A stretch of 61,503 nt of DNA, the filler included, from Choristocarpus tenellus KU-1152 (lineage: Eukaryota; Protista; Phaeophyceae): assembly GCA_964200185.2 (NCBI GenBank). It is 13 parts of 13 records of this genome, joined end to end, with 100 filler letters (N's around TTAATTAATTAA, not from the genome) between each part and the next. Parts side by side here need not be neighbours in the genome. Positions count along the whole stretch, not along the records: positions 38,787 to 45,269 come from CAXNAD020008042.1; positions 45,370 to 52,147 come from CAXNAD020007368.1; 11 more parts are not named here. One strand, 5' to 3'. The position numbers and the translations under genes are program-made. Under the pieces are notes generated by a model. It did no database searches. It saw only the letters and a list, made by a program, of their open reading frames with translations, and was not told the DNA's origin. Shown here one piece after another: positions 44,431 to 52,147 of this stretch (position 1 is its first letter; each line of letters starts with the position of its first letter).

Positions 44431-45422
44431 TAGCTGCTGTTTGACGAGGAGAGAAGGAGGAGAGAGATTGTGACGTTAAGTTTGGAAAGGTATTGGAAAA
44501 CCTTGAGATGAAGGCTAGGAAGCTCCCGACCAACAACAGGATCGCTAGGGGTCAGGAATGGCTGCAACTAGAAGAGCAGGAGGATGTAGTTGGGGCCTTG
44601 GCGTAGGGCCTCCCAAATGAGCGAGCAGAAGTACTTTGTGTTGCAAGCTCCACAAGTCAGGCTGCGGAGGAAAGGGATGAGTTGTCCAGAGATTAGAGCT
44701 TGGCATAATAGGATGGTGATGATGGTGGTGATGGTGATGATGACGGTGGAGGGGCGAATCTTCTTCCACCTTCCCTTATGTTGAAGAGGAACCATTCCTT
44801 CTTGAATTGGAGGCAAAGACAATGCTACATAATAAGGTAAAAAATGCAGTTATTCAGTCCTCTTGCTTTGAGGTCTTCGATGCAGACAAAAATCAGACCA
44901 TTATTTGACAAATGGGTGTCTTATTATATGCTTCTGTTCTCTTAACAAAAAGCATGGAGGGATACAACGTCATACCCAAGTAAACAATGAAGTCATAAAC
45001 ATGTGGATCACACTCATTTAAAAGAATGTCGACTAATGAAACGTTTTAACTTTTTTTACAATCAGTTCATCTCAAGGCGTGTCTGGACCAAAATGGTCAA
45101 GGTCGCCTTAAAGTAAACTTGCGCCAATAAGGAAGTTAGTCAATAAGAGTACTCATCATGTTGGATAGGACATGACAATAAAATAGCACAGGGTCACCTT
45201 GAAAGGGGCACGTACAGCACTAAACAGCCGATTTCAAAAATTGAGGATGGAGCTTTTCATTGAGGATGGNNNNNNNNNNNNNNNNNNNNNNNNNNNNNNN
45301 NNNNNNNNNNNNNTTAATTAATTAANNNNNNNNNNNNNNNNNNNNNNNNNNNNNNNNNNNNNNNNNNNNATCTCTGCCTCTCCCTCCCCCCTTCCTCCCC
45401 ACCCCCCGCCCCGATCCTCTTC

Positions 45423-48400
45423 TTACTCATCTTTGTCATCCCCTTCATCCTCTTCTTCATTCTCCTCTTCATCCTCCTCTTCTTCCTCCTTGTCCTCCTC
45501 CGCGTCGCTAACATACTCCGGCTCCTCTTCCGGCGCAGAATCACCGGCGCCCCTCCGCACCTTGCGACCTTTCCCCTTCCCACCCGTAGGGGAAGAGGGA
45601 CACTTGCGCTTTCTAGTGGTGATTGGCGTCAAGTCCGAGTCCGAATCCCGCACTTCGAACCCACGAGAACGCACTACCGTAAGACCGGGGAGCATGTGGA
45701 ACGGTGATCTCGCGTCATTCTTTGCCCAGGGTTTGCACACTCTCCCGACTACGGGCGTGACGAGCATCTGCCCGGGGCCAACCTGGGAGAAGGGGAGGAG
45801 GACCTCGTCACGCCTTCCGCTCTGCGGAACCTTTGACGTGAATTTAATGTTGGCGTCATCTGTCTTCTCGGTCCAACACATGTAGTAGAGAGGGCAAGTG
45901 ACTGCCACGCGCAAGTAGAGCTCTGCGCGCGGCCCACACACCTCTGTTCCAGGCGAAAGCATGCGCTTGAGCTGTTTGTTGTTGGCCACATGAAGCAACC
46001 GAATGCACTGTTCTTCTTGGTCTTCAAGAGAGATCGAACGGAAGGCCTCTGATCGAGAGTTGCACACTTGCAGATCACCCCACGCAGGGAGGTCATTTCC
46101 ACCGACTTTGTAGTCTTTTCCGTCAAGCGGGAATAAGGCCATTTCGGCGGGATTCGAGGACGAACTTGTACGCATCTGAGCATTGTGGAAGATAAAGACA
46201 GCGGTGGGGTTGGGGGGGGTGGAGGGGTGTTTGGGGGGGGGGGGGGGGGGTGGGGGGGGGGGCAGAGTTCGGTCATTCATAAATGGATGTGATATGGAGG
46301 TGCGCGATCGAAGGTGGTGCAAGAACGGCAACCTTATTGTGGCAAACGTTGAACACGCGACGGATCCAACACTTACCCACAAGGCCCATAGTCTTCTACT
46401 CAACGTATTTGGGTGCTGCATTAGATAGGTTCGGACTCGGGAAGAAAAAAAACGTGTCTACTGCATGCCAAGAGCGTGACTCTGCCATTCGTTCTTGACA
46501 AATATGTTACGAAGTGCATTCTATGCCAGATTCACCTCGATCTGGTAGCCGACGTCCGTCGACACCGTCTTCGCAACGAAAACGGTCGCCTCATCGTGCC
46601 CCATTGCCTTTCTCTAAGGACTGACGGCCTCAGAGTGAAGATATCTTAGAGGGTACGAGTTTCCTCCTGTTTGTCCATTTGGGGCTTGGCTTCCCCATTT
46701 TTTTTTTTTACATTTCACCTACTCCAAAATGTTTCAGAGTAGGTGAAATGTATACATTATGAAAATGTGTATCCAGAACGTGGACATTGATACTTCCCAA
46801 CAAATTCAATGGCCAAAATTATATCAAAATCTCAACATTGGATTTTAACCCCCAAATGGACGCGGCTCTACCCTCTCAGATACTTTGGCTCCCCAGCAAA
46901 ACATCGCTGTGTCTCAATTGGGACGAGGGTCTGCCCCAAGGCTTCCGGCAGGCAGGAAGGGCCTATCACGCATTCTTAAAAAAAAAGAGAACCGCTGCAA
47001 CTGCACCATTTACCAACCTTTGGAGCTCTGGTGTCCACTTCTCGTTGGGTAGAACCTGCCTGGTGCGTGAGATAAGCATCTTGGACATGTGCGCGTCCGA
47101 TTCGATCTCCTTGTAGTCCCTTGCCGTAGGAGTCTTCCTGTTGAATGATTTGTACCTGCAAAAAGAGAATAGCAGTGAAGGACGTCAACGAGAACGATCT
47201 GCAGGTAATGATGAGTAAAGGGTCGCCACTGCAGAAAATATTCTATGGAACGATTGTCATAGTTCAGAAAAGACAAGAGCACACATACACAGGAAACACA
47301 AACTGCAGGTAGTCTTTCCACAGTACTACGAACGGTTCGTCATTCGATACAAAAATGGCCGACTACGGTCTTCATCGTAGGAGACACCTATTGAACGTTC
47401 CTGTATAAGGTGCTGCGACCGGCACACATGTTGTTTATTTCTGTCTACACGATAAAACACAGTGGCCGTTTGACTTACCTCGCAAGAAGACGGATGCATA
47501 GCCCCTGCTTGAGAGAAGTGAAGTCGGCAAACTCCTTGCGACTCAGATAGCTCAGTGTGACCACGTTGCGGTCGACCTGTGGTGACGAGGTCTCACACAC
47601 TTCCTTCAGTACATCGAAGGACTCTGGTTGAAGGGACTTTACGCCTTGCTGCCAGTTTCGTAGAGTTGTTTTCGGCGGGGGAGTAACGCCCACCTTTGCG
47701 ATGGGCAGAAGTTGAAAAATATGATGCACCCAGTCAGCCAGGATGAGGCATCATTATTACCACGCCAATGGGGTATGTATGAGTGGGGGGGTGTTCTTCA
47801 GCGGCCTGGCCTAACGATAAAACAAACAAGAACGCTTTTTATTGTTCGTGTGTATACAACACAGACACAGCATGTGGTAGCCCACGAAGGAGAGAGTTTG
47901 GTTCGCAAAATGATGCATCGTGTGTTTATTAATTCAGGCGACACCGCAACGGTCCAAGCAAGGAGTGGACCTTACCCGTGGGAGGGAGGGGGGGAGGCAG
48001 TATGATACTCAGCGGCTTGGCCTACCCAGTGCTAAAATTAAAAACTGTTCACTTCGTCTGTGATTTTGCACACACACATACTACATGGTCACCCGAAAAT
48101 CAAGCATTTGGTTGAAAGGGTTGGTAAACACGGGATAACTATCTCAACTTAGGTTGAATAGGAGGACACAGAGAGATCTTCTCAACAGCTGTAACCCAAC
48201 AAGAGGAGGAGTAGAGTGCCACCATCCCACCAACGTTGACAACTCCCTCACCTTTTTGTACATTTTGCGGATCTCTGCTAGTGACACTTCTTTTTTCTTC
48301 GTCTGTCACTTGATAGCTTCTTGGAGCTCGGTACTGAAAATATACCTTACCGTACAGCGTGCGCTCAACCACACTTTCGGTCGCGTCCTTGAATGTTATA

Positions 48401-49153
48401 AGCGTGGCGGTGCAGTGGGCGAACGGGGCAAGGGGTCGGTGGGAAGCGGTCGCGGGACACAAGAGGCAGGCAGTAGTGAGCAACATGTTGCTGCCGATAG
48501 AAATGCCACGAGGGATAAAAAAGATCAACAACAAAAAGATCAACAACGAGCTGACTGACGATGAACAAAAGAAAGGAAACACGGCAACAACTTGGTAGAT
48601 CAGAAGAGTCATCAGGCGATCATGGAATAACAACAACACTCAACTTACTTAGTTGTTTTAGTTGATCAAAAGAGACAGGAGGTCATGGTACAACGACAAC
48701 ACTCCATCACCCACCGTTGGCAATTAGCCTCTCTTCTGCTTGGTTGAACTCCATGTAGACCCGCATCATGAAAGCGCGTTCGGGATCAAACTCTCTCTTC
48801 AACACTGCTATTCTATGGTTTCCGTCCAGTGTTCGTCCTTGAACGGCAAGCGCAGTGTCGGCGGTGAGCTCGTCCCCGTTGCCTAAGCAGTCTCATTGGA
48901 TGACGACGGATGGAGCAAACTGCTCGAGCCAGCCTTTTTCACGGATGGACTTGCTGAGTTGTGCAAGGCCACGCTCGGTCAGGGGACGCAACATCTCCGT
49001 GCATGTGATGTTGCCAAGTTTTATGTTGTACGTGCCGAGGTAGTGATGTTCGAGGAGCTTGGACATGCCTTTGGCATTGTTATACGACGCTCTCGATCCG
49101 TGGGCAGCGCCATCAGCGGGCAGGGGGGTTGTTGTTGAGCGAATGTTGGACAT
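45423..49153 (-). pseudogene. Spliced ParB/Spo0J-like gene (ParB/Srx N-domain, putative HTH, basic NLS-like segment, acidic tail), decayed; exons 48715-49153, 48252-~48395, 47479-47693, ~47014-47155, 46536-~46930, 45423-46175
   Basis: Exon 1 reads LRPLTERGLAQLSKSIREKGWLEQFAPSVVIQ*...RTLDGNHRIAVLK...EERLIANG. Exons 2-3 read EVSLAEIRKMYKK|VGVTPPPKTTLRNWQQGVKSLQPESFDVL. Inactivated by stops at 48893-48895, 48306-48308 and 46614-46616, a frameshift in exon 2 and a MITE in exon 5. Confidence 0.75.
46633..46891 (+). mobile_element. MITE family A, full-length, inserted in exon of ParB-like gene
   Basis: GAGTGAAGATATCTTAGAGGGTA...TACCCTCTCAGATACTTTGGCTC; flanks CTCA/CCCA (4-bp TSD, one mismatch). 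Removing it restores TLVPIETQRCFAEAVSP. Confidence 0.85.
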
Positions 49154-49605
49154 GGTGAAGATTGGGAGGGTGTGACGGGGAAAGATAAGTAAGGGGTAGG
49201 TTTTGCCCTTGGTTGTGGAGAGGTTGGCCGCACCCTGCGTTGGAGTTAGTTGCAAATCATGTGACCCAGCAGTACGTAGAAGAAGTGGATCGAAGGAGTA
49301 TTTCGAGTGGTGGTTGCATATTACTTTGACCGGTCTGAGACTATGGTTAAGAAAAAATGTGAAGATTCGTACGAAGTACTATTTTTTTGGTTTGTTATGT
49401 CGAGACTACAATGATGATGATGATAATCTTCGTGGCTTTTACGGAGGAAGGCACAGTGACTGTTATTTCACCGCTGTGTACACCTACTCTGCGGCCCCGG
49501 GCCCGGTCTGACCTTGGTAGTAAAAGTGTATACTTCATATATTTCAAGCGCTCCACGATGATGATGATGATGATCGTAGATTCGTCTCCTTTACTATTTC
49601 TGCAG

Positions 49606-51814
49606 ACGGCGGCGAGGCCCGAACAGAATGATGCTCTTGGCAGATTTACAAAGATCATTGTATTTGCTCTTTCATTACGCACAATGTAAGCTTGCTTGAT
49701 CCTGTCTTCCGTGTTTTCAGTTAAGTTATTGGTCAGCCCGCCTTCGAGACATCATTCAGCAGTGTTCTTCTCAATAAATCCTCACTTGCCCACACAACCA
49801 ACATTATTAATTAGGAGCTATACACGGATTTTTGCAAAGAGGCAATACGGTTGTGTATCCTGACGACACTTCCAAGTGGGTAAGCAAGGCGCACTTCCTC
49901 CGATTGCTCAGAGAGGACAGGCCTAACATCAGGTTGAGGGTAGGAGGCAAATTTATGAAATATGACATACGTGTCACGTTAAAAAGAGAAGCGGCACGGT
50001 GCGGCTGGTGCAAAACCTACGAACGACTCCACCGTCCTCGAGTCCATCGACAAGGAGCTGTCCGACCATCAAAGGGTAAGTGTCCAGCTTTAATTTTGCG
50101 CAATCATACAGTGGCAACATTTCGCCGTCATTGCTCTCCATTGGGAACAATATCTGTTGCCTTTTGCGAATGAAAACTCCGATGCAAGTGCTTATGGCAG
50201 CAGCAGTAGCCTCACTCAACGCAAAACTGTTGTTATTAGTTGCCCAAACATCTTGTGTAATAGACTGTGTCCTGGTCGTCTACAACGGGCTGTGGGAGGG
50301 ACAGGTCATGTTGCGGTCTTCCGGCCCCGCACGTACGTACTTTCTCCCTTCCCGATAATACTGTCTTTGCCTTGAATGCAGTAGTAAAAAACAGGAGCAA
50401 AGACAAACATTTATTGTTACCTACACTCGATTTTTGTCACGTACCTGGTACGTGTTAACAAGTGGCCATTTTTTTACACCTCTAAGCAGATTTATTTGAT
50501 TTACCTCCGTGATGTTGCTCTCCCCCATTCGCCAGATTATCCAAGCGGATAGGCTGGTTATCGCCAACGACACCAGCAGTGCCATGCGGGCCAAAGCCGA
50601 CGACAAACCTCTCGGCTTCGTGTTCATGTCTGTAGACGCGGCGAACCAGACATCCCACGCCCTCCCTGCACTTTACTCACCTACCCACGGCGGTGACAGG
50701 TAACAAATGCACGCATAGTCAATTTGTCAACAAGTTTACAGCCGCACACAGAACAGAATAGTCCACTCTGTTTTATTCAACGAATGAGTGCAAAGTCCCA
50801 AGAAATAACCGTCAAAACAGACGCACATAATTCCACTACCTATTCCGTTCATCATGATGATGACGCACTGTAACACCTTTCTTTACATGTTTCTTTGGTT
50901 CATGTCCTTCTTATCAGGGGCTACCACGAGCACCAGAAGGTCATGGACGCACACTTCGAAGGCCAGTTCGTGGAGGTGTTCTTCACTCCTCAAAATCTTG
51001 GAGGAGGTACGTATTGTGGGTTGTGGCTTAACAGTCACCCAACCGAATAGATGCTGGTTGCGCACGCACCACTTGATTTACCGTCATGGTGAGGGGACCC
51101 GCCGTAGGTTAGATACCCAAGGACGAGTACATCCTTGCACGATTTGCCTACAAATATCGCAGGCCTGGTGAACAGTCGATTAACTGATGATGCGCTGTGC
51201 TCCCCTGCCCTCGTACACCTCAGCTTCGGAAGGGCGAGAGTAGCGTAAGAGCTAATCAAGGAGGAGGGAAACCGACAGACATGTATATCAGCCAGTCGGG
51301 TATATGTGCTCTACATTGCAAAAACACATTCCATTACCCCTCTTTTTAGCTCCAAGTAAACAATGCGTAAGTAAGCAGAGTACTATTTGCCAACTAACGA
51401 CAGACATCATCGTTTGCGCAAGTTGTAACCTTGTCTGCACAGCCACCCACCTTGCCCTCACAAGGCTTATCGACAAGTACCACAACAGCCTCGATCACGT
51501 GGGGGGTTGCATCATCCAGCACGCGCATTGGCGGTTAAGAAAGTTTCATCTTGACACGACCTACTCAACATATACTCGCCGAATACCGGCCACCAAGTAA
51601 CTAACTGCACGTTGTTTAGTTTTGGTTTGTGGGTTGCAACCTGCATGTATGATGACGGTGATGTAGAGCTTGTGCTCTAGCAATATTGGAAACATGCCCT
51701 GTTTCTCCACGAAACGTGGTGAAATGGGCTGACATATCGGCGTCACGCCTATCCCTCCCTCGCTCCCAAATCCCCAAACTGGCCAGGTCGACAACTGCGT
51801 CTCAGAGAACAAGA
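49606..51814 (+). pseudogene. Spliced Sola-like (DUF7869-type) DDD transposase, decayed; exons ~49606-49685, ~49816-50075, 50536-50699, 50918-51006, 51350-51370, 51443-~51596, 51787-51814
   Basis: Ordered motifs: ELYTDF...VSKAHFLRLLREDRPNIRLR..FMK(Y)DI(R) (eroded CxxC)...H, FMSVDAANQ..ALP (first Asp), QKVM..HFEG, LGGAPS..THLALTRL, VDNCVSENK (second Asp). The five exons from 49816 to 51443 join in phase; truncated by a MITE at 51815. Confidence 0.75.
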
Positions 51815-52147
51815 GAGCCAAAGTATCTTAGAGGTTAGAGCCGCGTCCATTTGGGAGCCAAAATCCAATGTTGCGATTTTAATGTAATTTTGGCTATTGT
51901 GTTTTTTGAGTGAAAGTATCTTAGAGGGTACGAGTTTTGCCCTGTTTGTCCATTTGGGGCGTTGCTTCCCACATTTTTTTAATGGCATTTTCCTACTCTG
52001 AAACGTTTCGGAGTAGGTAAAATTTACACATTATGAAAAGTTGTGTTCAGAACAAGGATATTAACACTTGAGCCAAAGTATCTTAGAGGGTAGAGTTGCG
52101 TCCATTTGGGGGTCAAAATATAATGTTGCGATTTTGATGTAATTTTG
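51815..52147. mobile_element. Three nested/rearranged MITE family A halves (ends at 51815, 51908, 52070)
   Basis: GAGCCAAAGTATCTTAGAGG at 51815 and 52070 (reverse orientation), GAGTGAAAGTATCTTAGAGGG at 51908 (forward). Confidence 0.85.

Follow-up and report, generated by a model that had tools for sequence, protein, structure and literature searches.

The question raised by this locus is whether a transposase gene and a gene for a ParB-like protein, which face away from each other on one contig of the brown alga Choristocarpus tenellus, are two parts of a single mobile element. The window, that is, the whole stretch of DNA analysed, is 61,503 nucleotides long, and the piece concerned occupies positions 45370-52147 (6.8 kb); it is brown-algal DNA with its nearest copies in C. 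tenellus, at 86-91% nucleotide identity. This piece very probably represents the inner part of a dead, internally deleted copy belonging to a multi-copy family of Sola1 DNA transposons in brown algae, of the Sola1-1_Ec32 type.

The copy was interpreted by comparison with twelve related loci (L001-L012), among which three C. tenellus contigs are closest: L001, with ~90% identity over window positions 47985-49193; L008, with 86% identity over 45376-46634 and a match reaching 46980; and L009, with 90% identity over 49853-51814 (1964 nt). Motif positions were read from a six-frame translation of the window, and spliced models were searched exon by exon, the ParB exon as separate pieces flanking its stop. 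The exons in the window, being too short and decayed, matched nothing in Pfam, and a profile search with the ParB alignment returned only weak ParB-clan matches, so that the identity of both genes had to be drawn from paralogues and from folding.

The transposase gene

The following parts of the transposase gene are present in the window.

49816..50075, plus strand: Sola1 transposase exon (ELY..F, decayed CxxC) with two frameshifts; from translation, read copies and the L009 match
50538..50699, plus strand: transposase exon that holds the first catalytic Asp (SVDAANQ); from comparison with relatives
50919..51008, plus strand: transposase exon (core strands); from comparison with relatives
51443..51564, plus strand: transposase exon, end approximate; from comparison with L009
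51787..51814, plus strand: beginning of the exon for the second catalytic Asp (VDNCVSENK), interrupted by an inserted transposable element; from comparison with L009

The Sola-like DDD-transposase motifs that a sequence-only reading had placed on this strand are all found there, in the order ELYTDF at 49816, FMK-D-R--LK with the decayed CxxC at about 49955-49984, SVDAANQTSHALP at about 50629-50667 and VDNCVSENK at 51787-51813. The first two catalytic Asp motifs thus lie inside the window, while the third region (GHTH..D) falls beyond the insertion and the contig end. Locus L009 runs on past the insertion point with VDNCVSENKNN and then MMVGHTHIKIDQIF, and its exon carrying VDNCVSENKNN matches PF25273 DUF7869 (E 9.8e-20). 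By eye, the motifs correspond in wording and succession to those of the published Sola1-1_Ec32 transposase (FMLCKIC, MMDGANQ, VFFAPQILG, QVDNTVAENKNN, MMVGHTHIQIDQIF). Judged by the DUF7869 match and these motifs, the plus-strand gene is a Sola1-type transposase gene. The transposases of L009:4780-5200 and L006:2028-2500 seem to have at their C-terminal end a conserved beta-rich domain (L.W..P...Y) and, after it, an acidic tail. At L012:1-5278 a long terminal repeat retrotransposon (rve, RVT_2) lies directly downstream of the catalytic exons of the Ec32-like transposase.

The accessory gene and its ParB domain

The minus-strand gene is far longer than its ParB domain, with three further exons to about 46999 and a last exon that extends down to 45423.

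48715..49150, minus strand: accessory gene exon 1, ParB/Srx-fold N-domain (DGNHR motif), with an in-frame stop at 48895-48893; from translation, profile and family model
48246..48396, minus strand: exon 2, ends approximate, with a +1 frameshift at 48331 and one stop; from comparison with relatives
47478..47695, minus strand: exon 3, helical, start approximate; from comparison with relatives
46999..47162, minus strand: exon 4, truncated by a deletion; from comparison with relatives
46533..46980, minus strand: what is left of the exon after the methyltransferase-like domain, interrupted by an insertion; from comparison with L008
45423..46190, minus strand: last exon, with a conserved C-terminal domain, a basic stretch resembling a nuclear localization signal, an acidic tail and the stop, start approximate; from comparison with relatives

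Reading down the minus strand, exon 1 presents an ATG at 49150, LSKSIREKGWLEQFAPSVV, the in-frame TGA at 48895-48893 (an Arg codon in paralogue L001), LDGNHR, and LIAN ending at about 48716. A profile search with this exon found 128 relatives, and all those bearing a species name are brown algae. A family model based on 91 of them, built on the protein of L002 (66% identical to the window's domain), folded with a predicted local distance difference test score (pLDDT) of 89.6 and matched structures of ParB, PadC, KorB, Noc and sulfiredoxin (Srx). Its best match was PadC (Z 9.8, root-mean-square deviation 2.6, 95 residues aligned), and Foldseek gave an E value of 6.6e-4 to Myxococcus ParB. In the alignment of the 91 homologues, G85 is invariant, D84, H87, R88 and R30 are nearly so, and a G-x-x-R resembling ParB box II is near invariant; the same alignment found no match among PDB sequences. 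The ParB N-domain proposed from the sequence alone is thus confirmed, through the modelled fold, as a ParB/Srx fold. Inner branches of the domain tree lack good support, and for that reason no claim is made on transfer or on the order of events.

The same reading had described the whole gene as coding for a ParB-like protein. The domain itself stands, but the full protein of the family is a fusion of ParB with a DNA-methyltransferase fold, the exons for which are deleted here. Relatives L005, L007, L010 and L012, in which the exon order is conserved, carry between the parts found in the window the exons for a helical region, a zinc (Zn)-finger-like segment and a methyltransferase-like domain. 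By this comparison, the order of the protein in intact elements is a ParB/Srx N-domain, the helical region, the Zn-finger-like segment, a beta-class N6-adenine/N4-cytosine (N6A/N4C) methyltransferase fold, a C-terminal domain and an acidic tail, and by a rough count the exon pieces of the relatives add up to about 1100 aa. The methyltransferase-like domain, which is also present in close paralogue L008, was folded from Cladosiphon protein P0094 and tied to the near relatives by pairwise matches; it is predicted to adopt the beta-class fold (Atlas score 0.92; M1.HpyAVI Foldseek E 3e-6; MboIIa Z 13.8). The C-terminal domain (window 45640-46190, minus strand) is well conserved, at 54-70% in ten matches, and the last exon gave no sequence match in Pfam, NCBIfam or PDB.

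A 332-aa open reading frame at 45423-46421 was considered as a separate element and rejected, being collinear with the ParB gene in L004, L007, L010 and L012. Apparent stops after exon 3 at 47477 and before ELY at 49816 proved both to be splice sites.

Deletions and decay of the window copy

Two junctions account for the parts that are missing from the window copy.

46981..46998: deletion junction, with the helical, acidic, Zn-finger-like and methyltransferase-like exons missing (about 5 kb in L007); from the end of the L008 match, the lack of an exon match and the order in L005, L007 and L010
49193..49195: deletion junction at which transposase exon 1 and the bidirectional intergenic region have been lost; from the end of the L001 match, loose read ends and exon-1 comparison

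At the first of these, L008 can be matched only as far as 46980, a point some 18 bases away from where exon 4 ends and midway through the exon that comes after the methyltransferase-like domain, and searches of the window for the methyltransferase-like, helical and Zn-finger-like exons gave no match. On this comparison, the accessory gene has undergone an internal deletion of about 5 kb by reference to L007: the Sola1-1_Ec32-type family has a methyltransferase-like domain, and the window copy reads as a deletion derivative without it. In locus L004:10001-13379, the distance from the ParB exon to the last exon is 2.8 kb with no middle exons detected, which suggests that another species has lost the methyltransferase region independently.

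At the second junction, the match to L001 ends at 49193, loose ends precede 49195 in two read runs, and other copies in the genome have a different sequence left of 49195. The N-terminal exon 1 of the transposase is present in L001, L002 and L012 and absent from the window, and this pattern identifies a second deletion that removed the shared promoter region together with that exon. The gap of 0.45-0.65 kb from which the two spliced genes had been described as facing away is accordingly a deletion scar, given the missing exon and the divergence of copies at 49193/49195; the head-to-head layout is upheld but the spacing is not native. The segment 49195-49815, on the transposase side of the junction, is multi-copy, has no informative match in the loci compared and is probably an intron or small exon. 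Comparison of L001:1-664 with L009:5093-5303 shows that L001 is another internal-deletion derivative, in which transposase exon 1 is fused to the transposase 3' end without the catalytic core.

Similar decay was claimed for both genes, and stops, frameshifts and insertions were found in each. The further lesions comprise the +1 at 48331, a TGA in exon 2 of the ParB gene, a +1 at 49985 and a 2-nt excess near 49851. With promoters, transposase exon 1 and methyltransferase exons deleted, and with these lesions in both genes, the window copy is predicted to make neither protein.

One transposon or two

The arrangement recurs elsewhere. An accessory gene stands head to head with a transposase not only in the window but also in L001 (Choristocarpus), L002, L006 (Pylaiella) and L012, and in L006 inverted repeats of 129 bp, with 95% identity, enclose both genes, not the transposase alone, over about 16 kb. 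Both genes are in addition covered end to end by many copies at 85-95% identity (four read runs from a single study, one of them perhaps from the source sample). Loci L003, L005, L007 and L010 are too short, or truncated on the transposase side, to show linkage. On the strength of the recurring layout, the terminal inverted repeats (TIRs) of L006 and the multi-copy coverage, the two genes are assigned by sequence comparison to one dead Sola-type DNA transposon with the ParB-like gene as its accessory gene, as the sequence-only reading had supposed in describing a composite element.

Several observations weigh against this assignment or leave it less complete. The ends of the window copy lie beyond the contig, as was recognised from the start, so its TIRs and target-site duplication (TSD) are off the sequence. 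The inverted-repeat ends of L006 lack a clean 4-bp TSD; the ParB genes of L004 and L011 have no transposase match within 10 kb upstream; and the model of the methyltransferase-like domain is of low confidence (mean pLDDT 51). The genes might alternatively derive from two independent elements, or from a host gene and a transposon, brought together by rearrangement at 49193/49195. That the junction sits exactly between the genes, that no single relative spans the piece across it, and that the two ParB-gene loci just mentioned have no nearby transposase would all fit such an origin. The orientation of the genes, on the other hand, is that expected from a simple deletion in a head-to-head element. 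L001, which is about 90% identical to the ParB gene, carries transposase exon 1 joined to the 3' end found in L009, and L009 is 90% identical to the window transposase; this ties the ParB gene family of the window to its transposase family. The ParB genes, moreover, are multi-copy both among relatives and in read data, unlike single-copy host genes, and a host-gene source for the ParB gene was rejected on that ground. A chance juxtaposition is thus very unlikely, and the single two-gene transposon is retained.

The interrupting miniature element

Both genes are interrupted by copies of a miniature inverted-repeat transposable element (MITE).

46633..46891: 259-bp MITE with GAG...CTC ends, 23-bp TIR and a 4-bp target duplication (CTCA/CCCA), a secondary insertion; from the L008 empty site and copy number
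51815..52147: three nested or partial copies of the same MITE, with starts at 51815, 51908 and 52070, running off the contig; from comparison of copies

The MITE is a later, unrelated insertion. L008 provides the empty site for the copy at 46633-46891, and in L009, which holds four copies, the 4-bp duplication is perfect (ATCT/ATCT). The family has an internal hairpin and a very high copy number, with a read depth at least ten times that of both genes. The observation that one MITE family interrupts both genes is correct, but it says nothing on whether the genes belong together, because the MITE is very abundant genome-wide. The copies at 46633 and 51815 were also considered as the element's own TIRs and rejected on the basis of the L008 empty site, the separate 4-bp duplication of each complete copy, and their position inside exons. 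The GAG...CTC ends differ from the ends of Sola1-1_Ec32 (AACCG-CGGTT) and look Sola2-like, by comparison with an entry with GGCGG-CCGCC ends and a 4-bp duplication.

Proposed action of the accessory protein

Intact elements, by comparison, carry two divergent spliced genes, one for a DDD transposase and one for an accessory protein of roughly 1100 aa. Sola transposases move their element by cut-and-paste through its terminal inverted repeats, generating a 4-bp duplication. On balance, we lean towards an accessory protein that binds the DNA of its own element, possibly at palindromes between the genes, and in this bound state regulates the element's expression or chromatin.

A candidate site of this kind is present in the region that the window has lost. 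Beyond the equivalent of 49193, L001 continues with about 1.3 kb of AT-rich intergenic DNA and then the divergent transposase exon 1; in L002, which is arranged alike, the start codons are 0.67 kb apart. The palindrome TCCGnCGGA occurs twice in each of these intergenic regions (L001:1070-1802; L002:1228-1365) and nowhere else in the scanned loci L001-L012 and the window, and in L001 the sites sit within tandemly repeated units, each about 269 bp long, with inverted repeats. Of 2000 resamplings, 22 produced a shared GC-rich 12-mer. Because L001 and L002 are relatives of each other and the motif is missing from L006 and L012, which are more distant, the palindrome is treated only as a lead, a candidate parS-like site for the ParB domain.

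Alternatively, the intact accessory protein could methylate DNA and thereby label its own element with N6-methyladenine or N4-methylcytosine, the activity proposed for Ectocarpus (PMC12477816). The predicted beta-class N6A/N4C fold, that published prediction, and a related red-algal accessory gene with a PF01555 domain (10.1101/2025.02.11.637652) speak for activity. The catalytic motifs do not. With positions set by eye from the alignment and secondary structure, six relatives lack DPPY, NPPY or SPPY at the catalytic-strand position, where GAEP, GAEQ, RAPH, AADP and SLHE are found, and lack FxGxG at the S-adenosylmethionine-binding position, where SAEKH, SAERH, STERH, TAESD and SAEGD are found; nor does the accessory gene match Pfam N6_N4_Mtase. 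Domains without DPPY and FxGxG were noted in L005, L006, L007, L008, L010, L012 and P0094. An active enzyme is therefore considered unlikely. The loss of both motifs in the six relatives indicates that the fold is probably a pseudo-enzyme, and with the motifs degenerate the protein probably acts by binding rather than by methylating.

A different role would lie in transposition itself, with the ParB-domain protein serving as a bridge or clamp for the ends of an element that, at 16-21 kb, is very long, and not acting in silencing or expression. ParB proteins are known to bridge and slide on DNA, the elements are giant, and the box II-like G-x-x-R is near invariant in the 91 homologues. The candidate palindromes, though, lie between the genes and not at the ends, the accessory protein has extra chromatin-type domains, and ordinary Sola elements are normally described with a transposase alone. 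This role appears improbable, and regulation through binding is preferred. A bolder form of the binding model, which we hold to be doubtful, is that giant Sola1 elements across brown algae keep a ParB protein with a catalytically dead methyltransferase fold that loads in ParB fashion, perhaps CTP-dependently, on parS-like GATCCGnCGGA between the genes. If true, a transposon would be running a ParB-parS pair in a eukaryotic nucleus and using it for self-control without a methyl mark. Brown algae have negligible 5-methylcytosine.

Comparison with known systems

The pairing of ParB and Sola1 genes is not new, contrary to what had been thought when the locus was first read. The Ectocarpus element Sola1-1_Ec32 is 21.5 kb long with 282-bp TIRs and a 4-bp TSD, and an opposite-strand gene codes for a protein of 1104 aa that combines a ParB-like with an N4C/N6A methyltransferase domain, for which an accessory-protein class that binds and modifies its own transposon was proposed (Genome Biol 2025; PMC12477816). 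A Bostrychia preprint (10.1101/2025.02.11.637652) describes ParB-oxygenase and N6A-methylase accessory genes by inverted-repeat arrays in red-algal Plavaka elements. The window piece is thus a doubly deleted copy of a published kind. It is tied indirectly to the published family through L012, the transposase of which is very close to that of Sola1-1_Ec32 (by eye) and the accessory gene of which is homologous to the window's from the ParB domain through the last exon.

Shared with Sola1-1_Ec32 are a Sola1 transposase with matching motifs, an opposite-strand accessory gene with ParB and methyltransferase domains, the build of a giant brown-algal TIR element, and an accessory length of about 1100 aa in relatives against the published 1104 aa. 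The window family has nevertheless diverged in another brown-algal lineage, its ParB domain being about 30% identical to that of the Ec32-like L012, and the window copy is dead, lacking the methyltransferase exons, promoter region and transposase exon 1. The methyltransferase, treated as potentially active in the Ectocarpus work (PMC12477816), is without catalytic motifs in the relatives compared here. What is added is the extension of the accessory gene from one Ectocarpus family to Choristocarpus, Sphacelaria, Ascophyllum, Pylaiella and Cladosiphon, with the head-to-head pair shown for Choristocarpus, Pylaiella and loci L002 and L012, together with a suggested pseudo-enzyme status of the methyltransferase fold and a candidate binding site. 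These additions make it testable how brown-algal transposons regulate themselves.

The Plavaka genes PAG2/PAG3 of Bostrychia (10.1101/2025.02.11.637652) are alike in joining a transposon-borne ParB-like domain to a DNA-modifying fold and in having inverted-repeat arrays, proposed as binding sites, beside the gene. They differ in belonging to an EnSpm/Plavaka and not a Sola transposase, in the fusion of ParB to a 2-oxoglutarate oxygenase, and in placing the N6A methylase in a separate gene with a SET domain. The ParB/Spo0J CTP clamps of bacterial ParABS systems share the fold of the N-domain and the conserved G-x-x-R box, the algal likeness being one of fold only; the algal proteins have DGNHR instead of GERR, and no ParA-like gene was seen in the loci read. 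In domain order, the algal protein resembles the ParB-N6_N4_Mtase fusions of phages and bacteria (ParB-terminase loci; PMC4738411), which have a ParB N-domain followed by a beta-class amino-methyltransferase and which among Atlas clusters lie closest to a full-length relative, whereas the algal gene is spliced and transposon-borne, with Zn-finger-like and acidic insertions and degenerate methyltransferase motifs.

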